NCBI RefSeq assembly: GCF_032191835.1
Contig: NC_083237.1
Coordinates: 23,932,001 to 23,996,000, forward strand
Direction: 5' to 3'
DNA from: Heteronotia binoei
Lineage: Eukaryota
Length of the DNA stretch: 64,000 nt
Under the pieces are notes generated by a model that worked only from the letters and a program-made list of their open reading frames with translations, was not told the DNA's origin and ran no database searches. Positions within the stretch are counted from its first letter, which is position 1; each line of letters begins with the position of its first letter. A program made the position numbers and the translations under genes. Positions 14,369 to 60,137 of this stretch are shown here, one piece after another.

Positions 14369-17281
14369 ATGGAAGCCAATGCAGTGAGCGACGAGGGTGT
14401 GCATTTCCAGAGCTACCCCTTCGACTTCCTGGAGTTCCTGAACCACCAGCGCTTTGAACCTATGGAGGCTTATAATCACGAACACGCCAAAGCAGTTGCC
14501 ACCCTTCCTTGCCCACAGCCACCTTACGAGTACGCCCAGCCGCCCACCGCTGCCCCGCCTGCTCACTTTGACCGCATCCCTCCAACTGTTGGCACATCTA
14601 AGCCCAAAACTGAAGGGCCCTCCTCCTCCTCTTCCTCCTCCACCTCTTCTACAAACGTTCAAGTCAAGAAACCTGACCCCGGGGCCCCTGCATCGCAGCC
14701 GCCACCACAACAGCCACAGCCCCCATATAGTGCTCCATCAGTGGTTCCACCAACAGGCCAGCCTCTCTTTGATACTACAGCAGCCGCTGCAGCCGCTGCT
14801 GCTGCCTACAACACTCCACAGTGGGGTATCGTGGACCTTTCCGGCCACCAGCACCTCTTCAATAGCCTGAAACGTGGGCAGGCACCACCACAAGCCACCT
14901 CTTCCATAACCCCTGACAGCCAGGCAATCAAGGACGACAAGAATTACTTCCGGCGCCTGAAATACTTCATCGATCGGCGCTTCCCGTGCGGGGTGTGTCA
15001 GAAGTCATTCAAGCAGTCGTCCCACCTAGTACAGCACATGCTGGTGCATACGGGCGAACGGCCGTACGAGTGCACCACTTGTGGGCGCACCTACAACCAC
15101 ATCTCCAGCCTCATCCGACACCGCCGCTGTCACAAGGACACTGAGGATGCCGCTGCAGCTGCCAATGCGGCAGCTGCCAATGTAGCAGCCGCAGCAGCTG
15201 CTGCAGCTGCCGTAGCCAATGCAGCAGCCGCTCCCAGTGCCGAGGGAGCTGCCCAACCTCCCACCCAGAGCAACAACCCGCAGGTGGTACCGGCACCAAC
15301 TGGTGCGACAGCTGCTTCTGCTCTAGGCGCCGCCATTGCTCAGACAGAAGGCCCTTTCACTTGTTCTCTGTGCTGGAAAGTGTTTAAAAAGCCGAGCCAC
15401 CTGCACCAGCATCAGATCATCCACACTGGCGAAAAGCCTTTTTCGTGCTCCGTCTGCCAGAAGAGCTTCAACCGCCGTGAGAGCCTGAAGCGTCATGTAC
15501 GGACCCATTCAGACCTCTTGCGAGTGCAGTGCGGGGTGTGTGGCAAGGAATTCCGGGATGCCTCCTACCTGCTCAAGCATCAGGCCACCCACGCCCCGCC
15601 TGGAACCATACCCCCACGCCCTGAATACAAGTGTGACATCTGTGGCAAGGGCTATGTAGCTCCCCAGAACCTCCTGCGCCATCGGCAGCTGCAACATGAG
15701 GGAGCCCAGCTGCCCAAGGATGGCACCAGTGCCCTGTCCTACCTGCCACCAGGGGCGTATCTCCTTCCACAAGATGGACAGGCTACCAGTTCTGAGGGAG
15801 ACACCAAGCCGGCATCGTATGGGCTTCTGGGGGCCCACCCGCTGTTGGTGGGGACGGCAGCAGGCAAGAATTTCTGCTGTGGGATCTGTGGCCGTGGGTT
15901 CGGAAGGAGGGAGACGCTCAAGCGACACGAACGGATCCATACAGGGGAGAAGCCGCACCAGTGTGCAGTGTGTGGGAAGCGCTTCCGTGAATCCTTCCAC
16001 CTCAGCAAACACCATGTGGTTCACACACGGGAGAGGCCCTACAAATGTGAGATCTGTGGGAAGGTTTTTGGTTACCCGCAGAGCTTAACCCGACACAAGC
16101 AGATCCACCGGCTGCAGCTTCCTTGCTCTTTGCCACCCATGGGGCCTTCACTGACATCCATGGGGCCTTCGCTGCCTCCTCCTCCTGAGGGGCTGACCTA
16201 TGGGTGTTCTGACTGTGGCGAGCGCTTCCCGGATCTCTTTCACGTCATGAGCCACAAGGAGGTCCATGTGGCTGAGAAGCCATACCCTTGCGATGCCTGT
16301 GGCAAGTGCTTTGGCTTCATCGAGAACCTCATGTGGCACAAACTGGTCCATCAGGCGGCCCCTGAGCGGCTCCTCCCCCCTGATGAGACAGCAGCAGCCG
16401 TGGCTCCCCTGGAGAATGGGCTGGCTAGTGGTGACAGTATGGTGGCATCCTACGAAGATCACCATCCCACCTTGCCAAGCGGGGAACGCTTCTCCTGCTC
16501 CATCTGCGGCCAGACCTTCAAGCATTTCCTGGGGCTCGTCACCCACAAGTACGTGCATCTGGTGCGCCGCACGCTGGCCTGTTCAGTATGCGGGCAGAGT
16601 TTTGCAGGGGCCTACGATCTGCTGCTGCATCGCCGTACCCATCTTCAGAAGCGCCATTTCTCTTGCCCCGTCTGTGGGAAGCGCTTCTGGGAGGCTGCTC
16701 TCCTGATGCGCCACCAGCGATGCCACACAGAGGAGCGTCCGTATCGCTGCGCCGTCTGTGGCCGTGGCTTCCTGCGCTCGTGGTACCTGCGCCAGCACAA
16801 AGTGGTGCACACGGGCGAGCGGGCCTATAAGTGTGCCCTCTGCAACAAGCGCTTTGCACAATCATCCAGCCTGGCTGAGCATCAGCGCCTCCATGTGGTG
16901 GCCAGGCCCCAGCGTTGCCCCACCTGTGGCAAGACCTTCCGCTACCGCAGCAACCTCCTGGAGCACCAGCGAGTGCACCTGGGTGAGAAGGTCTACCGCT
17001 GCGATCGCTGCTCCAAGAGCTTTTTCTACCTGTCGTCCATCCTGCGCCACCAGCGCTCCCATGATGCCAAGCGTGAGTTGCGATGCGGGGCTTGCCTCAA
17101 GCTCTTCAAGGACCCCAAATATTTCAGCAAGCACCTCCAGGCCCACCAGGGCGGACGGCCTTTCAAGTGCAGCACCTGCGGGGAAGCCTTCTCTAACACC
17201 TACGGTCTCAAGAAGCACCGCCACATTCACAAGATGGAGCGCTTTGCAGCCATGGGGACCCACAAGGAACAACAGCCCTAG
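14369..17281 (+). CDS. ZNF865: Zinc finger protein 865, 970 aa, 20 C2H2 fingers, single coding exon
   Basis: The N-terminus GVHFQSYPFDFLEFLNHQRFEPME, PQWGIVDLSGHQHLF and KDDKNYFRRLKY..RRFPCGVCQKSFKQSSHLVQH match recalled human ZNF865. 20 C-x2-C-x12-H fingers were counted. Acceptor ttttctttgtctag at 14345 lies 23 nt before a strong Kozak ATG (GAGATGG). Confidence 0.95.
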   Translation: MEANAVSDEGVHFQSYPFDFLEFLNHQRFEPMEAYNHEHAKAVATLPCPQPPYEYAQPPTAAPPAHFDRIPPTVGTSKPKTEGPSSSSSSSTSSTNVQVKKPDPGAPASQPPPQQPQPPYSAPSVVPPTGQPLFDTTAAAAAAAAAYNTPQWGIVDLSGHQHLFNSLKRGQAPPQATSSITPDSQAIKDDKNYFRRLKYFIDRRFPCGVCQKSFKQSSHLVQHMLVHTGERPYECTTCGRTYNHISSLIRHRRCHKDTEDAAAAANAAAANVAAAAAAAAAVANAAAAPSAEGAAQPPTQSNNPQVVPAPTGATAASALGAAIAQTEGPFTCSLCWKVFKKPSHLHQHQIIHTGEKPFSCSVCQKSFNRRESLKRHVRTHSDLLRVQCGVCGKEFRDASYLLKHQATHAPPGTIPPRPEYKCDICGKGYVAPQNLLRHRQLQHEGAQLPKDGTSALSYLPPGAYLLPQDGQATSSEGDTKPASYGLLGAHPLLVGTAAGKNFCCGICGRGFGRRETLKRHERIHTGEKPHQCAVCGKRFRESFHLSKHHVVHTRERPYKCEICGKVFGYPQSLTRHKQIHRLQLPCSLPPMGPSLTSMGPSLPPPPEGLTYGCSDCGERFPDLFHVMSHKEVHVAEKPYPCDACGKCFGFIENLMWHKLVHQAAPERLLPPDETAAAVAPLENGLASGDSMVASYEDHHPTLPSGERFSCSICGQTFKHFLGLVTHKYVHLVRRTLACSVCGQSFAGAYDLLLHRRTHLQKRHFSCPVCGKRFWEAALLMRHQRCHTEERPYRCAVCGRGFLRSWYLRQHKVVHTGERAYKCALCNKRFAQSSSLAEHQRLHVVARPQRCPTCGKTFRYRSNLLEHQRVHLGEKVYRCDRCSKSFFYLSSILRHQRSHDAKRELRCGACLKLFKDPKYFSKHLQAHQGGRPFKCSTCGEAFSNTYGLKKHRHIHKMERFAAMGTHKEQQP

Positions 17282-22290: not shown

Positions 22291-24154
22291 GCCCTTATGT
22301 ATATACACACTGGACAGAGAAAGCAATGGCATTGGGACTGTGTATGTATCTTACACTGGGGAGGATTTGCATTGCCTAAAGAACTGAAGCAAGAAAACAA
22401 AAGGAAATCAAAGGAAACTTCCCTGCAGTATGGGAGTTACAAATTAGGGCAAACATTTTGAGACCCACTGATCTTTCTGCTTCTAGAACCTAGTCCTGGA
22501 AATCCAGAGGGGTTTGGCAACTACCTTCTTCAAAAATGTTCCCTTTCTACTGAGAAGGAGGTTTTTATTGTCCTAACAAATTCTTAGCAAGTTAGAATAA
22601 AAGGGGTGAAGATCCCTGAAGGCACCTCTGTCCTGAAAGGTTTCTGACCAGTATGGACCCAGTGCTAACATGATGGTACAAGGGAAAATGTGGACAAGCT
22701 AAAGGAGAAGCAGAGTAGAATCTCACTGTCACATTAAAATACTGGAAGTCAATCCCAGAAATGGAACATTCTGAGGTAACGAGAAGTCCCAAGAGCTAAT
22801 TTCTGACTAATTTCTGCCCTCGAGTGATAAAGCAAAAAGGGGGGGGGGGGGGGGGAAGAACCCAGCTAAATGATTCCAGTAACCAAAAGGTTGAGTAAAA
22901 CAACAAACCAGTGAAGGAGGGTATAAATTTCATAAATGCCACTAGAAATACCATAAAATATGAACTATAATATTTGAAATAAAATACATTAACCTTCCTA
23001 GTCAGGTAAGATAGCAGCACATTAAATCATTGTCCAGTGCATTTTGGCAAGAAATTACCTTAATCAGTGTGTGTGTGGGGGAATTCCTGAGAACTGTGTA
23101 TAGAGTCATATAAAACCACCATACAGAAGTATGTATCCTGCTGATCAGGTAAAACTGTTCAGTGTACCACTATAGAATTAGTGCCTTCCTATAAACCAGC
23201 ATCTTCAAGTCTACACTAAAATCCCTGAAATTCAATCAACAGTACAACTCTCACTATATGTGGTTAATGTATTATATTTCATTTAATATGTTAATATATT
23301 TCATTTAATATATTTATGGTATTTCTAGCGGTATTAAATTTATACACTTCCCTTAATGATTCACTGTCTGCTTTTCTCAGCCTTTTGGTTACTTGGCTTC
23401 CTTTCCACACCAGTCTCATTCTGGGAGAGGGACAAGAGCTGGCAGAGGAGAAGCTCATACAACTCATTAGAATACTACAAGATTTTAAATTTGTGGAAGG
23501 CAGTAATGTTACCTAGCCAAACATAATATTTTCAGGTCTTGTTTTATCGCAAAGAAGAAACCACAATCCAAAAGCATCCATACATTGGCTCTAATTTAAA
23601 ATAAATTGCAATATAAGACAAAACACTTGCAAGAAATCCTAAGTAGAACTTGCATGAGAAACCATCTCTCCCCTCCCCTGTTTGTTTCAGTTCAACCTCC
23701 CCACCCCGCACAGCAGGATAGAAAAAAAGGCAGGGAATAACAGCGCAGCCCCATCGTTCAGCAGAATCTTGTACGGGGGTCTCAGTTATTTGCTCAAAGC
23801 CCTTATCAGTGGGCAGGACTTGGAGAGCATGAATGCTATCTATCTGGAAAGTTTTATATGAAAAGATAATAGCAGAGTGCCTCTTGCTCATTCCATGTTT
23901 TTATCCCTCATGTCACAGAGGTTCCTGTACTGCTCCACTCTGGACAAGTTTCCATGTTTTCTAGGATTAATGTGTGTTGGTTTTTGTACCATGAAAGAAA
24001 TGCAAGTTCAGATGATAACTCAATGCACACTGATTTTTTTTAAGTGGATTGAAAACACTTGTTTAGAAGGCTGCATGTGTTCTGAATTGTGAAGTTGTAT
24101 GATACAGCCAAGCCAACCAATTTGTGATGCATATGGAAAGCCGCCGTGAAAATC

Positions 24155-24527
24155 CATCCTAGGAGAACAAAGTTGGAGTTCAGTAGCACCTTTAAGATCA
24201 ACAAAGTTTAATTGAGAATTTAAGCTTTCATGTGCATGCACACTTCATCAGATAGTGAAAATGGGGTACAATTAGCATTGCTACATATAGCTTGTGGGTA
24301 GTGAGTGGTTAAGCATGCAAAATAGTACAAAGTTAGAATCCAATAGTATAATAATGAAATTATGTAACACAGCTAATTGAACCCAATTTCATTGTCTGAC
24401 AAAGTGTGCATACAAAAGCTTACATTCTGAATATAACTTCGTTGGTCTTAAAGGTGCTACTGGACTCCCAACTTTGTTCTGTTACTTCAGACCAACACAG
24501 CTGCCTGCCTGGATCATCCTAGGAGAA
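24155..24527. mobile_element. Penelope-type inverted terminal repeat insertion with 13-bp TSD
   Basis: 24164-24252 is the inverted copy of 24396-24480. It is flanked by the direct repeat CATCCTAGGAGAA at 24155-24167 and 24515-24527. Confidence 0.75.
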
Positions 24528-25505
24528 GACCACAAGGGTGTTAAAGGGCTTATATTGCAAAATGTGCAATGAGGCAAGATCTGAGAACAATTTTTTTAAA
24601 ATAAAAAAGGGCTGTCCAGAAGTGTATAAGGTTTCCTTTAAGACGGAAAACAAATCACTTCTGCAAAGACACATAACAAGACAGTAAGTGGGATCTAAGT
24701 AAATTAGATGGAAGTAAATTTAAACTGAATCTTCAGCAGAAGTTTCATGGAGACTGGAGTAGGTAGTCTCAGATTTTCTCCCAGGCTTTATTGAGGGAGT
24801 GGAAATAATGCAATTTTGCTGCTCTCCTGTCCCTCCCCACCCATCACAATTACCTGAATATTCACCATGGTATAAAACACATTTTTAAAAAAATAACTGT
24901 AGATTTACAAATCAGAATTACCACTATTTGTTTTTTGAACATGACAACTTTTCAGAAAATTTATTTCTGGCTTTGGGTATTTGCTGACAATAGTTAAAAG
25001 ACTTTGAGGAGACTTTTGCCCCTCTAATTCCCTTTCCACATGTTGCTCCATTGCAGGCAAAACATGAACAGGTATTTAAGTCCCGCCACCCCCCCCCCTT
25101 TAACTAATAATTTTGGCAAATACATTTTTAGAGCCAAAAATCATTTTAAATTTGCCCGCTTCGTGATGAGCATGCTTAAAAACCTGTGGGTGGTGGCTAC
25201 TACCAGGCCTTTCCTAGAGAAAAAAAACCCTCAACTGTATAAAGTTACACAAACTATGCAAATTAGCAGATCCTTGTTTATTTTTTTCTTCTGCTATCCT
25301 CGGGAGGGGACACACAACTACACAAGGCACTGATTCACTACAAATTTTGCTCAGCTTCTTTTCAGCCCCACTTTGTCCACTTATTTTGGCCTCTTCATAG
25401 CCTGAAGGACTAGGAACTTTGAAACGAGAAAATGAGGTTCTGAATGAATGCTGAATTCAGTATTACAGTGTAGGAATTATCACAGCTCTGATTTCAGCTA
25501 CCATA

Positions 25506-25690
25506 TGCCATCTGGATAGCCCAGGCATTTCATGAGATCTCTGTAGCTAAGCAGGGTCAGCCCTGGTTAGTAATTGGATGGGAGACCACCAAGGAAGACC
25601 AGGAGTGTGACGCAGTAGCAACCCACTTTGACTTGAAATCTCTGCGGGGTTGCCCTCCCTCAGCTTTGACTTGACAGCACTTTCCACGAC
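25506..25690 (+). mobile_element. 5S rRNA-derived SINE (best-preserved copy), inside the ZNF784-like 3' UTR region
   Basis: GATCTCTGTAGCTAAGCAGGGTCAGCCCTGGTTAGTAATTGGATGGGAGACCACC closely matches vertebrate 5S rRNA (GATCTCGGAAGCTAAGCAGGGTCGGGCCTGGTTAGTACTTGGATGGGAGACCGCC), then continues into a non-5S tail. Confidence 0.8.
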
Positions 25691-25718
25691 ATACCATCGA
25701 TAAAACCCTCTGAAGCAG

Positions 25719-27728
25719 TCACTGTGGCTTGACACTCCGTGATATTTTCTCCACACCCTTATTGCCACTTCCTGTGCTCTCCTGCAAATGAAGCCGGCGA
25801 TGTTTGGCAAAGTTGGAAGAGTTATTGAAGCGCCGACAGCACACGGTGCATTCAAAGGGCTTTTCCCCAGTATGAAGCCTGCGGTGAGTTGCCAGGGCTG
25901 AGCTCTGCGTGAACCGCTTACCACAGACGGAGCAGCCAAAGGGCCTTTCACCTGTATGTACTCGCAGATGCTCCTTCAAATCAGTAGCACGCCGGAACTG
26001 CTTGGGACATGCAAAGCACAGGAATGGCTTGGAATCAAAGTCTGATTGGGAATGCTGAGCATAAGGCTCAGAATCTTGGAAAGGAAAGCAGGTAGGACTC
26101 TCTCCTTCCCAGGGCTGAATGGTGCTGCTGAATTGGTCTTGCAGTGAGTGGTGGGGGGACACTGAGAGGTCATAAGGCGAAGAGCACGCATTGGAGATGC
26201 CTGGTGCCCAAGAGGATGAACCGGGGCGCCTGTCAAAGGGACAACATTCTTCAAGTTCCTCTCTTTCCTTCATGGTCTCCATATCAGACTTTTCCCAGAC
26301 CATGATATCCCCCCTTTCAGGACAAGTTCCCACAGACATTTTAGGCACTAGAGAATTCATGTTTCCAGGAGTACATGTTTGAAAGTTCACCTGTTTCTCC
26401 TTGCCGGTGCTAGCATCATGGCTCAGATCTCCAAAATGGCTGGTGCAATTTTCACTCATGCCATGGACATGCCCTTCATGGCTGACATTTTGTCTCAGCT
26501 TTGTGGAGTGGTCATAGTGGATTTGCCTCAGCCCACTGTTTGGACTTCCCCCAGTGCCATTCTGTTTCATGTCTGCAATGGTGTCCTTTCCTCTGGTGTG
26601 CTTCAGCCCTTTGAGGTAGCCTCCGTTAGGCCTCCTGTCTAAGTTGTAGCCCCTGACACTACCATTTTGGCTATGAATATTGCCACCCACTGATAAGAGG
26701 CCTTTTCCATAGCTGACAACATCTAACTGTAACCTACCACTATAGCTGGCAACATGTTTCTGGTCTCCCTGAGTGTCACTTTCCTCTGCTTTCCTTGACT
26801 TCAGGCCTTTAGTGTGATTTCCCCCACTACCATACTTCAGAAGTCTGAACCTGTGGCCATTTTGAGCTTCCCCTTGTTCAAGGCTGCAGTTTCCATTTCC
26901 CCCCTGTTCACCAATATATCCTTTGCTATCACCTACCTTAAGTCGGACACTTCCATGTCTCATTTCAAGGTTAGGGCCACAGTAAGTGGCACCTTGCCTT
27001 ACTTTCATCCTCTTAAAATGACCTACATTATTACCAAGTTGCCTTAGACTGTTGTTACCACCATCTTGGCCTAGAAGCCCATTAACATAAGGGCCATTTT
27101 GTCTCCCAACAAGATTGTGGGCCCTGTTCCCGCCTTCTCTCAGTTCCTTGATGCTTTGGTGGCCATTTTGACTCAGTATCTTGCTTTGCCACTGGTTACT
27201 GCCTGTGGCCTGATGCTGCTTCTTCCCCCGAAGGATGGTACAGTTCTTCCCATCCTTCCCCTTGGGACCATATTCATATGGTTGTCCATGGATACGTTGG
27301 TGTTTGCGAAAATTGGAGCCATTGTTGAAAGACTTTAAGCAGACTGTGCAATGGAAAGGTCGCTCACCAGTATGAATACGCATGTGGCCAGAAAGCACCG
27401 AACTCTGAGTAAAGCGCTTACCACAGATACCACAGCCGTAAGGCCTTTCTCCCGTATGCACCCGCTCATGGTCACGCCGGTCTGAGGCCCTTTTGAAGCG
27501 CTTGGGGCAAAAAGAACAACCATAAGGTCTGTCAGCAGGGAGGGCCTGGGTCTCTAGGTTGTCAGGCAACCAGTTCCCAGGCTCCAAAACAATGCTTTTG
27601 CAGGCCTGGCACTGTGGAGTCTGCCCTGGGGATCCAGAAAAGTCTGGTAGCTCCTCCTGACACAGACAACAGGTTGGGAGAGTTACTGATCCAGTTTCTT
27701 CCTTTACTTTAATCAGCTCTGTTTCCAT
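25719..27728 (-). CDS. ZNF784: ZNF784-like C2H2 zinc finger protein, 669 aa, two 3-finger arrays separated by a long low-complexity linker
   Basis: Fingers [55 protein letters not shown] match the recalled C-terminal triplet of human ZNF784. Position and strand next to ZNF865 fit synteny. A minus-strand acceptor (ttttctttttcctaag) opens the exon at 27772, and an in-frame TAA lies just upstream of the ATG. Confidence 0.8.
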
Positions 27729-28799
27729 CAGTTAGTCCAAAGCATCACAGCACCAGCTTCTCAGTATCTGCCCTTAGGAAAAAGAAAACAGAAACAGAAA
27801 ATGAGAAAAGGGAACATGGGAAGGGAGGGGAGGAAAAGTAAAAGTGACATATAAAATTAATGCCATATACTGGGGGCCCCATGCACATACCTTCTTCCAG
27901 GAAAATTCAATTTCCAGCTTCTCTGTCTTAACTCAAGTCTTCCTGGATGTCTTGGGAGTGCTAGACCCCAGTTCTGCAGTCTCTCAATCTCCAATTTCTC
28001 TTTTAGAAATCCTTTTGTTCTTCAGCCTACTCAAGGTCCCTGGGGAATTCTGGGTCTATGCTCATTACAACCCCCACCGTTTCACTTTGTTCCCAAAAAG
28101 ACATGGGTACTCCAGCGCCAAAGCGACTCCCCTTCGTTAGGCTCTGCTTGTTCCTTATACAGTGGAACCTCCATGTACAGGAGCAGTCTGCCTTTAAATG
28201 CAAGACACTGGTGCAAACGACAACAAGCAAAAGGCCACTGTCTTCATGTCTTCCTTGTGAGTGCCCAAAGGTATCTGGCCAGGCGCTGCAAGAAAAAAAA
28301 CGAAGGGATAGGCCTGGAGCCTGCCACCCCCACAATGCAATTCAATTGTCTGACCTCAACCCTCCTCAAACTTACTAGACTCCACTCCTTTTGCGGAGGA
28401 GAAAGTCTCCCAACCAGGCCTGTAGCCAGGATTTTAAAAAATTGGGGGGGGGGGATTTAAAAAAGTCAGGGGGCACTTAGTGGCTCCCCTCCCTTGGCCA
28501 CCACCTGCATAACTCAGGACGCCTGACTTTCCCTCCCACCCCCACCCCCACTGGGGGCCTTTAGGAGGGGTAGCAGCTGCTTCTTTCTGGGTACCTCTCC
28601 CCTGCAATTTAAATCATGCGGGGAGGGAGGGAGCAGAACCCAGCCTTTCAGCTTTCACCCCTGCAGTGGTGGCAGGGGGAAGTAGGGAAGGCTGGGGGCA
28701 CCCATCAGGAAGTCAGAGGGAAGGGCCCCCACAGGTCCTCCTGTAGCTAAAGGCCTGCTCCCAACCCTGTCAAGGGGTGCCCCATCTCCATCCTGCCCT

Positions 28800-29600
28800 A
28801 CACGGCTCATTTCCTTCTCAGGAAACCCCTCTTAGACGCCTCGATCTCTCCCCCCTACTCTTCCCCCGAAAAGCCCCGGCGCTCTCCTGATTCAAAGCTT
28901 TCCTCTCTCGTCCTTTTAAACCCACCCAGCCCCCTCCCAGAGAACCCAGGCGTCCTGGGCCCCCAACCCCTTCTAGAGTATCCCGGCGACAGGCTTCGCA
29001 GAGACCTCGAGCGGCCGTCCCCGAGTCCTCCTCCGCGTCGCTGCAATCCAGCAGACCCACTGGTCCCCTTTGGAGTCCTGGGAGCTGAGAGAGAACAATA
29101 GCCCGACATTGGGCACGCCGAAGGCGCGGGGGCTGGAGCTCCGCCGGGTTGTGAGATCGGTATGCAAGGCCGATGCATGTCCACAAGACATGTCCCTACT
29201 ACGGTGAGTAAGTTCTTCCCACTTCTCCCCGCCACCACCACCCCACATCCCTCCCCCCTTCACCCCGATTTATTTACTTCGGTCTCTTTGTTTCCCACCC
29301 TCTGCTCTTCCCAAGAACTGCACGGAGATTTCTCCGGCCGAGCGGTTCCCTTTTCCTTTCTCCAGGCGGACTCTCACCTGCGCCGTCTCATCCAGTGTGG
29401 TTCCGGAAAGATTTCCCCCCCAAAAGTCCCTTCCCAACTTTCAGCTGCCTTCGTAGAGAAGCAGGGGAAAAACTCCCCTCCCCCTCCTCTTTCCTGCCCA
29501 TCCTCTTCCTTAGTCTTTACCTCCCCTTTAAATGGAGCCCAAAAGGAAATTAAAGGAAACGGGGAGATTGTGGCCTCCCCCCCCTTTTTGTCTGCCGTCA
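28800..29600 (-). promoter_or_regulatory. CpG island and candidate exon 1 of the ZNF784-like gene (minus-strand donor CAG|GTGAGA, exon end 29378)
   Basis: CpG-rich. Palindromic ETS-like TTCCGGAA at 29401-29408. Consensus minus-strand donor 1.6 kb upstream of the coding exon acceptor. Confidence 0.6.
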
Positions 29601-29867
29601 AAAAGTCTGGCTAATAGCGAGGTGGTTTTTTCTTATTATTTATTTAAAGAGAAAGAAGCACTGTTGATGGGAAATCGGATTAGGCACCTTTTGCCACAGA
29701 TGTGGCTTTTATAGTTCAATTATCTTCGAATTTTAATATTAACGAAGATCTAAATTCCACTAGACCCACCCCTCCGCTCTGTTTCCCAGTTCAGGGGCAA
29801 CTTGTAGGTAACCTTGTTGGTCCATAGGGTAGGGGGAGGGATCCAGTTGTGTAATACCACTAGGAAA

Positions 29868-30232
29868 CAGGGCTCTTTTTGTACAAAAAAGGCCACAGGA
29901 ACTCATTTGCATATTAGGCCACACCCCCTGATGCCAAGCCAGTTCCTGTTTAAAAAAAGCTCCCTCTCTCTGTAGTTGGAAGGGACCTCTAGGGTCATCT
30001 AGTCCAACCCCCTGCACTATGCAGGAAATTCACAAGTTCCTCCCCACCCCCACAGGACTTTTTATGGCAGGAACTCCTTTGAATATTAAGCCACACAACC
30101 CTGATGTAGCCAATCCTCCAAGAGTTTACAGGGCTCTTAGTACAGAGACTACTGTAATTTCCAGGAGGACTGGCTGTATTAGGGGCGTGTGGCCTAATAT
30201 GCAAATGAATTGCTGCTACAAAAAAAGCCCTG
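29868..30232. mobile_element. Two adjacent hAT-type MITEs (family D, TIR CAGGGCTTTTTT) with a CR1/SINE-tail fragment between them
   Basis: Termini CAGGGCTCTTTT (29868) and AAAAAAAGCCCTG (30232). Same family as the TSD-flanked copy at 55564-55673. Each carries ATTTGCAT/ATGCAAAT. Confidence 0.6.
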
Positions 30233-30239
30233 CAATGAA

Positions 30240-30380
30240 ACGTTAGCTTCCATTTCTATGTATCAGAAGTGTGTGAAAGCTTATTCCTGGGATAAACTTT
30301 TGTTGGTCTTAAAGGTGCCACTGGATTCAACATTTGTTCTACAGTTTTGCACCAACACAGCTAGCCACCTGGATCTAAAA
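30240..30380 (+). mobile_element. Penelope terminal fragment
   Basis: GAAAGCTTA..TTTGTTGGTCTTAAAGGTGCCACTGGA..CAAC.TTTGTTCT...ACCAACACAGCT, the same motif as 24396-24505. Confidence 0.7.
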
Positions 30381-30934
30381 AGCCACAAAGTTACTCATGG
30401 CTTTAATGAAGTGTCAGAAGACTGAGGGCAGATTACCCACCCTCCTGGGGCAGAAAATCCCATACCTGAAAATGTCATCAGTCTCATCTCTGTCAATGTA
30501 TACAAGCAGAACTCCCAGAAGGGCTTCACTCTCAAGGGAAGGCCTCAGATCACACAATCAGGTTGCTCTGACCTTTAGATAACCCAGTCCTTTTGAATTG
30601 GGCCCCAGAAACAAAGTAACAGTCAATAATGCTGCAGCAGCCATATAATTATGTGTTGGAAAATGGCCATAGATCAGCAGAAGTGCCTGTGCTGTGTGTG
30701 CAAGAATCAAGGTTGAATCTGGGCTTCTTCTGTTCTGTCACTGGTAGTAGGTGCTGGGAAAGTGTTTTCTCTACCAGAGACTCTGGAGAGCTGTTGCAAG
30801 TCACAGCAGACAATATTGGACTAGACAGCCTCTAGCTGTACTTATACTTTTATTTGTTACTTTTAAATTTTGCTTTAAATAAACAGAAATATCTGCAGCT
30901 GTTATGTTCTACTGTAGCATTTTAAATCATGCCC

Positions 30935-31110
30935 TGACCTGGATGTCCCTGGCTAGCCTGGCCTCATCAGACTTTGGAAGCTAGGGGTCAGTCTTGTTTA
31001 GTATTTGGATGCGAGACCACCAAGAAAGTCCAGGGTTGCTTCCCACCTGTTAGTGCTGAAATCTTTTGGGGTATCTGTAAACTGGCTCTGACTTGATGGC
31101 CCTTCCCACC
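30935..31110 (+). mobile_element. 5S-derived SINE
   Basis: TTGGAAGCTAGGG.TCAG..TTGTTTAGTATTTGGATGCGAGACCACCAAGAAAG is a 5S-like internal promoter region. Confidence 0.6.
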
Positions 31111-34827: not shown

Positions 34828-35586
34828 CTATGGTGTGGGGAGGAGCTGTAGACGGTGCTTCCGGCGGATATGCCTCTGAAGAGTGTTGCGCTCCCCAAAG
34901 CGCATATGGCATGCTTCACACTGGTAGGGCCGCTCACCCGTGTGCACCCGCTGGTGGTGCGAGAGCTCCCCAGAGTCACGGAAGCTGCGCTGGCAGATGG
35001 GACATTGGTGGGGCTTACGGCCAGAGTGGGTGTATTTGTGGCGCTCCAAGTGGGACGTGCGCTTGAAGGCCTTGCCACAAGCTCGGCACACATGTGGCTT
35101 GCTTTCCGAGTGGGTGATACTGTGGCGCTGGAGGTAAGACAGGTACTCAAATGTTCGCGAGCACACTGGGCAGCAGTACACCTTGCGCAAAGGGCCCCCG
35201 CTCCCTCCACCCTCTGTGCCTGCAGTCGCCTCAGCGGACCCCACCCCCTCTTCCACTAGTACCGTGTACGGCAGCCCCTGGCTGTCAATCAACAAGTAGC
35301 GCCCCAGTCGAGAAGTCTCTCCTTGTTCCATGCCGGTTGCCCCTATGGGAATGTGGGTTCGTTTGCCTGTGGCAGGCAACCCATTCAAGCCCTGAAGAAG
35401 GGCACCTGCAGGAGAAGGCACTGGTGGCCGAGACAGTTTAGGAGGTGGAATTTGGACTTCCCCTCCCTCATCCTCCAGCTTAATGTGCCCCAAGCTACTT
35501 GTGGGGTCTTGGAGAGAGGAGCGTTCCATGGTTTCATCTGGTCTAAGAGGATCCTCTGTAGACTTGGAATGTCTCTGCAGCTCCAT
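34828..35586 (-). CDS. ZNF581: ZNF581-like (ZNF580/581 family) protein, ~252 aa, 4 C2H2 fingers
   Basis: YLLIDSQGLPYTVLVEE and CPVCSRTFEYLSYLQRHSITHSE.KP..C..CGKAFKR.SHL match recalled human ZNF581. The acceptor ctttctcattgcag opens the exon at 35629, so the first usable ATG is 35586, not the ORF-track start at 35661. Confidence 0.88.
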   Translation of the reverse strand: MELQRHSKSTEDPLRPDETMERSSLQDPTSSLGHIKLEDEGGEVQIPPPKLSRPPVPSPAGALLQGLNGLPATGKRTHIPIGATGMEQGETSRLGRYLLIDSQGLPYTVLVEEGVGSAEATAGTEGGGSGGPLRKVYCCPVCSRTFEYLSYLQRHSITHSESKPHVCRACGKAFKRTSHLERHKYTHSGRKPHQCPICQRSFRDSGELSHHQRVHTGERPYQCEACHMRFGERNTLQRHIRRKHRLQLLPTP

Positions 35587-45485: not shown

Positions 45486-45940
45486 GTGGAGGTGCGCTGG
45501 GCAGGGCATATTTCTAGGATGGAAAACCACCGCCTTCCCAAGATTGCCCTGTATGGCGAACTCTCCACCGGCCATCGAAATAGAGGGGCACCAAAGAAGA
45601 GGTACAAGGACTCCTTGAAGAAATCCCTTAGCACCTGTTGCATCAACCATCACCAGTGGTCTGACCTAGCCTCAGATCGCAAAGCATGGAGGCACACCAT
45701 CCACCAGGCTGTCTCTTCCTTTGAGAACACACGCATAGCTGGTCTTGAGGACAAAAGGAGATTGAGGAAGAATCGCACTGCTACAGGACCAACCCTAAAT
45801 CAGACTTTTCCCTGCAGCCGCTGTGGCCGGACCTGCCTGTCCCACATTGGTCTTGTCAGCCACCAGCGAGCCTGCAGCAAACGTGGACTATTGCACCCTT
45901 CTTAAATCTTCGTTCGCGAAGCCAAGCCGAGAGAGAGAGA
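45486..45940 (+). mobile_element. RTE-clade LINE, 5'-truncated, ORF2 C-terminus intact to the stop
   Basis: RWAGHISRMENHRLPKIALYGEL..G.R.RGAPKKRYKDSLK and the terminal CSRCGRTCLSHIGLVSHQRAC zinc knuckle are typical of RTE ORF2. It ends in a short 3' UTR and a (GA)n tail. Confidence 0.88.
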
Positions 45941-52278: not shown

Positions 52279-52471
52279 NNNNNNNNNNNNNNNNNNNNNN
52301 NNNNNNNNNNNNNNNNNNNNNNNNNNNNNNNNNNNNNNNNNNNNNNNNNNNNNNNNNNNNNNNNNNNNNNNNNNNNNNNNNNNNNNNNNNNNNNNNNNNN
52401 NNNNNNNNNNNNNNNNNNNNNNNNNNNNNNNNNNNNNNNNNNNNNNNNNNNNNNNNNNNNNNNNNNNNNNN
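52279..52471. other. Assembly gap (193 N)
   Basis: Run of N. The true length is unknown. Confidence 1.

Positions 52472-59585: not shown

Positions 59586-60137
<552 letters not shown>

Follow-up and report, generated by a model that had tools for sequence, protein, structure and literature searches.

An intact, expressed gecko member of a conserved vertebrate zinc-finger family with two separated three-finger arrays

The gene, its transcript and its protein

Here we describe a zinc-finger gene of the gecko Heteronotia binoei that lies in a 64-kb window (the whole stretch of DNA that was analysed; RefSeq assembly GCF_032191835.1, contig NC_083237.1, positions 23,932,001 to 23,996,000 of the forward strand). 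The gene was recognized from the list of open reading frames (ORFs) of the window, in which an ORF of 669 amino acids (aa) occupies the minus strand at 25719-27728. A six-frame regular-expression scan recovered exactly six canonical C2H2 fingers within this ORF, grouped as two arrays of three (Table 1). We found that the gene is intact and expressed and represents, in the gecko, a zinc-finger gene conserved among vertebrates. Very probably it is orthologous to the vertebrate gene to which NCBI gives the name ZNF784 in lizards, snakes and a caecilian, a judgement that we make jointly for its identity and for the evolutionary history set out below. On the basis of its sequence, the product is most likely a sequence-specific C2H2 transcription factor.

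Expression of the gene was assessed with two sets of RNA library contigs, all from one study, of either the same organism or a very close one, and with a depth of only about 5x. These contigs tile the ORF (25574-26653, 25632-26976, 26876-27124, 27302-27670, and 27051-27771), and no internal splice junction is listed within it in any of them; reads from the linker between the arrays were sparse in two raw-read RNA runs. The contig covering array 1 continues upstream through the splice that joins 27771 to 27890. Since both introns in the 5′ untranslated region (UTR) have canonical GT-AG ends on the minus strand, the contigs represent mRNA and not contaminating DNA. In addition, a Logan contig of 3412 nt from a skink-like squamate (L006) holds a complete, uninterrupted ORF of 665 aa together with 1.2 kb of 3′ UTR. 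The protein it encodes is 75% identical to that of Tiliqua, and the contig is spliced at the homologous 5′ UTR acceptor; a sister contig (L005) keeps the polypyrimidine tract and CAG of the intron. The coding sequence (CDS) also forms one continuous genomic range in the Paroedura, Eublepharis, and Xenopus orthologues.

Because C2H2 frameworks are alike everywhere, the similarity of the two arrays was tested against a background of 1964 three-finger windows from 245 other zinc-finger proteins, a set that was returned by searches and is hence biased towards similarity to the query. The arrays align without gaps and in register, first finger to first, second to second and third to third, with 63% identity over 84 aa (BLASTP, E 8e-43) and 64.6% over a 79-aa core. 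The background windows showed a mean whole-window identity of 46-47% to array 1 or array 2, with a maximum of 61%. Across the 21 positions of the recognition helices the arrays are 57% identical, a value reached by none of the 1964 background windows (mean 20-25%, sd 8%, maximum 52%). The similarity of the arrays exceeds chance. At the DNA level the second fingers are 74% identical and spaced exactly 1500 nt apart, and the arrays as a whole reach only about 64% identity. In both arrays the fingers are joined by canonical TGE[RK]P linkers.

Pfam matches in the 669-aa protein were to C2H2 families only; no KRAB, SCAN or BTB effector domain was matched, and no Pfam domain was found in the linker. 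A sequence search of the PDB found no solved ZNF784 structure, and its matches were generic C2H2 arrays such as ZNF568, PRDM9, Aart, and Zif268. Ratios of non-synonymous to synonymous substitution (dN/dS), calculated pairwise among three geckos by the Nei-Gojobori method, were 0.01-0.05 for array 1, 0.00-0.09 for array 2, and 0.37-0.47 for the linker, indicating that the linker is translated and moderately constrained. When AlphaFold2 was run on a 38-sequence alignment, both arrays received predicted local distance difference test (pLDDT) scores of 80-93. Residues 151-560 scored below 50 and lacked secondary structure, so that the linker is predicted as disordered. In charge it divides into a basic part (the first ~300 aa) and an acidic part (the last ~120 aa). 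Short islands within it are conserved across squamates (e.g., QNG.Q..E, LQL....GKG.L, NG..L.GLK, S.QDQ, and F.F...EP), which suggests that the linker may be more than a passive tether.

An earlier reading of this locus, made from its letters alone (the original prediction), had proposed two clearly paralogous three-finger arrays in one exon, 421 aa apart on a long flexible linker that is kept as exon. This description held up well. The finger scan returned the proposed positions exactly, and the base-contact residues (helix positions −1, 2, 3, and 6) were correctly given as RSDD/QSVG/NSNK for array 1 vs. RTDE/QSAT/NSNK for array 2. Paralogy of the arrays is borne out by a helix identity beyond background within one continuous coding exon, retention of the linker by the gecko contigs and by the entire ORF of L006, and flexibility, as a prediction, by AlphaFold2.

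Additional features of the transcript were observed outside the CDS. The 5′ UTR part of the coding exon contains an upstream ORF of five codons (27728-27745, minus strand; ATG CTT TGG ACT AAC TGA). Its stop codon shares one base with the main start codon (UGAUG), and control by termination and reinitiation could be possible. In the 3′ UTR, six nucleotides (TAACAG) are inserted after 25698 relative to the window in both RNA contig sets, and scattered single-base differences of ~0.2-1.2% between RNA contigs and window are consistent with population or sister-taxon variation. In each of the four RNA runs, two stretches (29722-30312 and 25388-25781) were covered at huge word depth, up to ~50,000, and had numerous loose ends and chimeric joints, one of which runs from 25597 to 29995. 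They look like an abundant dispersed repeat, possibly akin to a short interspersed nuclear element, with one copy in the 3′ UTR of the gene; an Rfam scan of 24000-31000 gave no match.

Table 1. Features of the zinc-finger gene, with positions in the window.
Feature	Position	Strand	Evidence
Complete CDS including stop codon, one coding exon	25719..27728	-	ORF list, orthologous CDS, RNA contigs
N-terminal motif, family consensus EIQ[VL]VKVKEE, kept from coelacanth to gecko	27696..27728	-	Alignments A2, A3
CxxC-x16-CxxC relic (C20, C23, C40, C43)	27600..27671	-	Alignments A2, A3
Array 1 (triplet B), three C2H2 fingers, aa 69-147, helices RASDRRD / QSSVLSG / NGSNFRK	27288..27524	-	
Array 1, individual fingers	27524-27456, 27440-27372, 27356-27288	-	Regular-expression scan
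Linker, 421 aa, Gly/Ser/Gln/Asn-rich	26025..27287	-	Composition, AlphaFold2, dN/dS
Array 2 (triplet C), three C2H2 fingers, aa 569-647, helices RATDLKE / QSSALAT / NSSNFAK	25788..26024	-	
Array 2, individual fingers	26024-25956, 25940-25872, 25856-25788	-	Regular-expression scan
Short C-terminal tail and stop codon, in place of terminal fourth finger	25719..25787	-	Alignment A2, turtle protein P0237
3′ UTR, at least this far; includes repeat-like stretch at ~25388-25781	25124..25718	-	RNA contigs X2 r9, X1 r1
5′ UTR intron, GT-AG; acceptor 44 nt upstream of ATG	27773..27890	-	Contig X2 r11 joins 27771 to 27890
5′ UTR exon 2, approximate bounds	27891..28285	-	Contigs X2 r11 (27890-28125), X2 r12 (28141-28285)
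5′ UTR intron, GT-AG	28286..29377	-	Contig X2 r12 joins 28285 to 29378
Part of 5′ UTR exon 1, stretch of 53.5% G+C	29378..29455	-	Contig X2 r12, composition profile

Orthologues and the origin of the two arrays

Word searches with the whole gecko protein retrieved full-length, collinear relatives (650-730 aa, 97-100% coverage) across Squamata, including geckos, anguimorphs, amphisbaenians, lacertids, skinks, iguanians, teiids, and snakes; the closest among the matches was that of Gekko kuhli (82%). Many of these proteins are named "zinc finger protein 784" by NCBI, in at least eight squamate species at 97-100% coverage, and a caecilian orthologue (Geotrypetes seraphini) is likewise named ZNF784. 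Other squamate orthologues bear names such as ZNF226-like, ZNF91-like or ZKSCAN5-like that reflect generic finger matches, and these inconsistent names could now be unified. Compared with named ZNF784 proteins (Paroedura picta, Tiliqua scincoides, Anolis sagrei, Candoia aspera, Pseudonaja textilis, and G. seraphini), the gecko gene is a typical member: identity is 51-83% among squamates, and the N-terminal motif, the recognition helices of both arrays and the single coding exon are shared. The gene is an ordinary conserved, expressed orthologue. Further searches were made with the full axolotl protein and its N-terminal half. Among sauropsids outside Squamata, the word searches matched only a turtle orthologue and a Pelusios gene model. 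No mammalian, bird, crocodilian or ray-finned-fish orthologue emerged from these searches, which were dominated by poly-zinc-finger proteins, so this is not evidence of absence.

Outside the amniotes, orthologues of 640-820 aa were found in axolotl, Pleurodeles, Xenopus, Ascaphus and many other frogs, two caecilians, lungfish, and coelacanth. Here the proteins contain three triplets of fingers (A, B, and C), a layout present in all three amphibian orders, lungfish and coelacanth. The order of elements is an EIQVVKVKEE motif (a motif of this type also begins the gecko protein), an atypical finger 0, triplet A, triplet B, a linker of ~300 aa, triplet C, and a terminal finger; lungfish and coelacanth have one or two extra fingers between triplet B and the linker. 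The helices read [SC][TS]SNLKD / QSSSLxx / [DN]ASNF[VI]K in triplet A, RxSDL[KR]D / QSSVLTG / NxSNFKK in triplet B, and RATDLKE / QSSALS[ST] / NSSNF[SA]K in triplet C. Judged by these sequences, array 1 of the gecko is triplet B, array 2 is triplet C, and the family anciently had three paralogous triplets. Unlike the amphibian and fish members, the gecko protein is without finger 0, triplet A and the terminal finger. The same holds in part for the turtle protein (Terrapene, P0237, 416 aa), which has the motif, no triplet A, triplet B, a linker of ~140 aa, triplet C, and the terminal finger. Alignment A3 contains 26 squamates, each with exactly 3+3 fingers; their two arrays start 485-515 residues apart, the squamate linker is ~420 aa long, and a short tail replaces the terminal finger. 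These comparisons indicate that the 3+3 layout is a reduction of a three-triplet ancestral state, shared by squamates and the turtle, and not a gecko oddity. By the same comparisons, squamates lost the terminal finger, and the sampled sauropsids (squamates and one turtle) are without finger 0 and triplet A as fingers.

To examine the relationships among the triplets, 6 A, 13 B, and 13 C triplets were placed with 40 background triplets, the 25 most similar included, in a maximum-likelihood tree over 79 columns. Triplet A (support 100/99) and triplet C (99/94) each formed a clade, and A grouped with C with moderate support (90/65); the placement of B relative to the background triplets is not settled in this tree. 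Each gecko array grouped with its positional orthologues, from turtle to coelacanth, and not with its partner array. This grouping by position across species places the duplications that gave rise to the arrays before the coelacanth-tetrapod split, and the arrays showed no sign of evolving in concert. Recent duplication of the arrays, or gene conversion between them, can be rejected given the positional grouping across classes and a DNA identity of only ~64%. The contact residues of B are invariant across 68 family proteins, those of C (RTDE/QSA[S/T]/NSNK) are nearly so, and where B and C differ slightly, the difference too is conserved across the family. By this alignment evidence, the base-contact residues have been essentially constant in B, and likewise in C, from before the split of coelacanths and tetrapods.

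These comparisons alter other parts of the original prediction. It had regarded the architecture as unusual for a C2H2 protein, whereas 3+3 is the rule in squamates and the turtle, and three triplets are found in amphibians, lungfish and coelacanth. It had also treated the arrays as sister copies and the N-terminal fingers of ZNF784 as unrelated to them; in our tree C stands with A, and in non-amniotes the N-terminal fingers form the third paralogous triplet. A twin-array layout standard across vertebrates, which it had named as grounds against an unusual architecture, is close to what we found: it applies to squamates and the turtle as 3+3, and not to non-amniotes, where the triplets number three. 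The evolutionary interest of the family is modest and lies in three ancient paralogous modules with frozen contact residues that were pruned differently by lineage.

A further trace of the missing fingers may be present near the N-terminus. Four cysteines (C20, C23, C40, and C43), at least 90% conserved in alignment A3 (38 sequences) and kept across lizards and snakes, stand where non-amniotes have finger 0 and triplet A. The segment aligns to the knuckles of the second and third fingers of triplet A, the histidine pairs of which are gone in squamates, and it is not found in the turtle protein. The N-terminus had a dN/dS of 0.21-0.24. AlphaFold2 scored the Cys-rich segment at a pLDDT of 59-76, with beta-bridges at residues 19, 26, 39, and 46. 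A possible reading of the segment is a small C4 zinc module that arose from two C2H2 fingers now dead.

The neighbourhood of the gene is also shared among geckos. A multi-finger ORF of 970 aa lies at 14369-17281 (plus strand), and a four-finger ORF of 252 aa at 34828-35586 (minus strand) belongs to a 90% cluster named "zinc finger protein 581-like" that covers Gekko japonicus, Eublepharis, Sphaerodactylus, and Euleptes. In Paroedura all three genes recur with relative order and orientation unchanged, and a 971-aa zinc-finger gene occupies the corresponding position in both Paroedura and Eublepharis; the Eublepharis ZNF581-like gene was not within the 10-kb flank examined. Among the genes at human 19q13.42, the 970-aa ORF presumably resembles ZNF865, and the ZNF581-like ORF the neighbours ZNF524/580/581. 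An ORF of 182 aa at 59589-60137 (plus strand) presumably resembles the C-terminal part of CCDC106, which would fit the ZNF784 neighbourhood at human 19q13.42. Human ZNF784 itself is ~323 aa long and probably corresponds to the N-terminal half. We also considered whether mammalian ZNF580/581 might be a fission product of triplet C, and rejected the idea: the gecko has its own ZNF581-like neighbour, the four fingers of which have unrelated helices.

Other observations in the window concern neither the gene nor its relatives. The 970-aa ORF is intact, with ~19 C2H2 fingers and long Ala/Pro/Ser-rich stretches, and its exact sequence is absent from the protein collection. An ORF of 139 aa at 45486-45905 (plus strand) ends in a CxxC...HxxxxxC knuckle and looks like a C-terminal tail, the remnant of ORF2 of a long interspersed nuclear element. 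A run of N occurs at 52279-52471.

Possible two-site binding and its alternatives

With its two ancient arrays, the protein invites consideration as a factor that binds two sites, the mechanism put forward in the original prediction, which had looping or avid binding to repeats in view. Each array would bind ~9 bp, and both would be expected to read related but non-identical sites, approximately 5′-GAA-nTA-CCG-3′, differing mainly at the middle finger. Because the predicted sites are similar, it is plausible that one molecule could engage two related sites of variable spacing and orientation and gain avidity on clustered sites. Taken as a whole, a conserved ZNF784 orthologue with two ancient arrays and plausible two-site binding is probably the best explanation of the locus. 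That two-handed binding is the actual mechanism we propose only tentatively, as a possibility that falls somewhat short of even.

Several observations weigh against this interpretation in one or another of its parts. Orthology to human ZNF784 rests on NCBI names and presumed synteny. In the tree, the group of B triplets is weakly supported (65/50), and a single clade of A, B and C is not rejected by the approximately unbiased test (p = 0.31), with 79 columns being too few to prove it. The predicted site derives from the canonical recognition code and is not a computed position weight matrix. The differences between B and C (D/E, V/A, G/S-T, and S/T) have been fixed for more than 400 My, a persistence that speaks against two arrays reading one site redundantly. 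At the depth available, the two arrays are never joined on one gecko RNA contig. Finally, among gene predictions, Pantherophis isoform X3 (538 aa) stops just before array 2, and Pantherophis isoform X2 and a Naja model show in-frame removal of part of the linker.

The fixed differences between B and C lend themselves to another explanation, namely a division of labour in which one array, probably B, would read DNA and the other would bind a different motif, RNA or a protein partner. B is presumably the array that mammalian ZNF784 has retained. The age of the contact differences, which were fixed before the coelacanth split, and the position of C with A rather than with B in the tree both favour such a division. 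So does the finding that human ZNF784 has a distinct non-canonical motif beside its canonical one in high-throughput systematic evolution of ligands by exponential enrichment (PMC8408965), which we count in favour of our main explanation as well; this was the only informative paper that we found on the motif sequence or architecture of ZNF784. However, B and C have identical or conservatively exchanged residues at 10 of the 12 canonical contact positions, and both arrays combine canonical TGE[RK]P linkers with near-zero dN/dS, as is typical of DNA-binding arrays. On balance we consider a division of labour rather doubtful.

A bolder form of the two-site idea is that ZNF784-family proteins are obligate multi-handed binders, the triplets of which clamp or bridge repeated copies of one ~9-bp site. 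Three ancestral triplets, or two in squamates, would then have kept near-identical reading residues for more than 400 My, and the disordered linker would hold conserved interaction islands. The shorter mammalian form would be a derived, single-handed remnant, and the C4 module of squamates would be new. We regard this extension as unlikely.

It is also conceivable that splicing inside the large exon switches between one- and two-array proteins and that the one-array forms are the main products. In addition to the snake predictions described above, a Pelusios gene model joins B directly to C; together, the snake and turtle models with a shortened linker or a single array (P0026, P0054, P0029, and P0289) hint at intra-exonic splicing in some lineages, or else at model artefacts. 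All of these shortened forms are gene predictions, however, and none like them was seen in the gecko RNA data at ~5x, where contigs cross the whole ORF with no internal junction listed. The spliced skink-like contig carries the entire ORF, and the linker is open in every squamate examined, with the dN/dS reported above. An isoform switch of this kind is thus quite improbable. An assembly or annotation artefact, in which two neighbouring three-finger genes, or a gene and a pseudogene copy, were read as one ORF, has nothing in its favour beyond the unusual spacing of the arrays and is effectively refuted by the ORF itself, which is uninterrupted in amphibians and in over 25 genomes or transcriptomes of squamates, by purifying selection along the whole length, and by overlapping RNA contigs.

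Comparison with known two-handed factors

Two-site binding as considered here for the gecko protein is, by analogy, not a new mode, and precedents are provided by ZEB1/2 and HIVEP. At the level of the single array, each gecko triplet is a canonical three-finger unit of the Zif268/EGR1 type with TGE[RK]P linkers, and its helices differ. At the level of the whole protein, two finger clusters are found on one polypeptide with a long, predicted-flexible linker, which is the layout expected of two-handed C2H2 factors. ZEB2 binds in a two-handed manner by finger clusters separated by a long flexible linker, and in ZEB1/2 the N- and C-terminal clusters bind two CACCT(G)-type boxes, with the tolerated variation in spacing and orientation being attributed to the long linker (PMC8304685). 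The gecko protein resembles ZEB1 and ZEB2 in having two clusters apart on a long and probably flexible linker. What sets the ZEB proteins apart is their 4+3 fingers together with a homeodomain and SMAD/CtBP-binding regions; nothing of this was seen among the Pfam matches of the gecko protein, which were to C2H2 families only. Membership of the ZEB family was rejected, as there is no homeodomain between the clusters and no sequence orthology to ZEB.

Another parallel is offered by the ZAS/HIVEP/Schnurri proteins (PRDII-BF1/MBP-1), which likewise have two widely separated, paralogous finger modules. In these proteins, each of the two finger domains on its own recognizes one and the same consensus (PMC3048431, citing Fan and Maniatis, 1990). 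The gecko modules differ in being finger triplets and in belonging to a protein on the 74-kDa scale. If its modules do read related sites, the family would provide a small and tractable two-handed model beside ZEB and HIVEP, and it would be the non-mammalian proteins, not the human one, that merit study.

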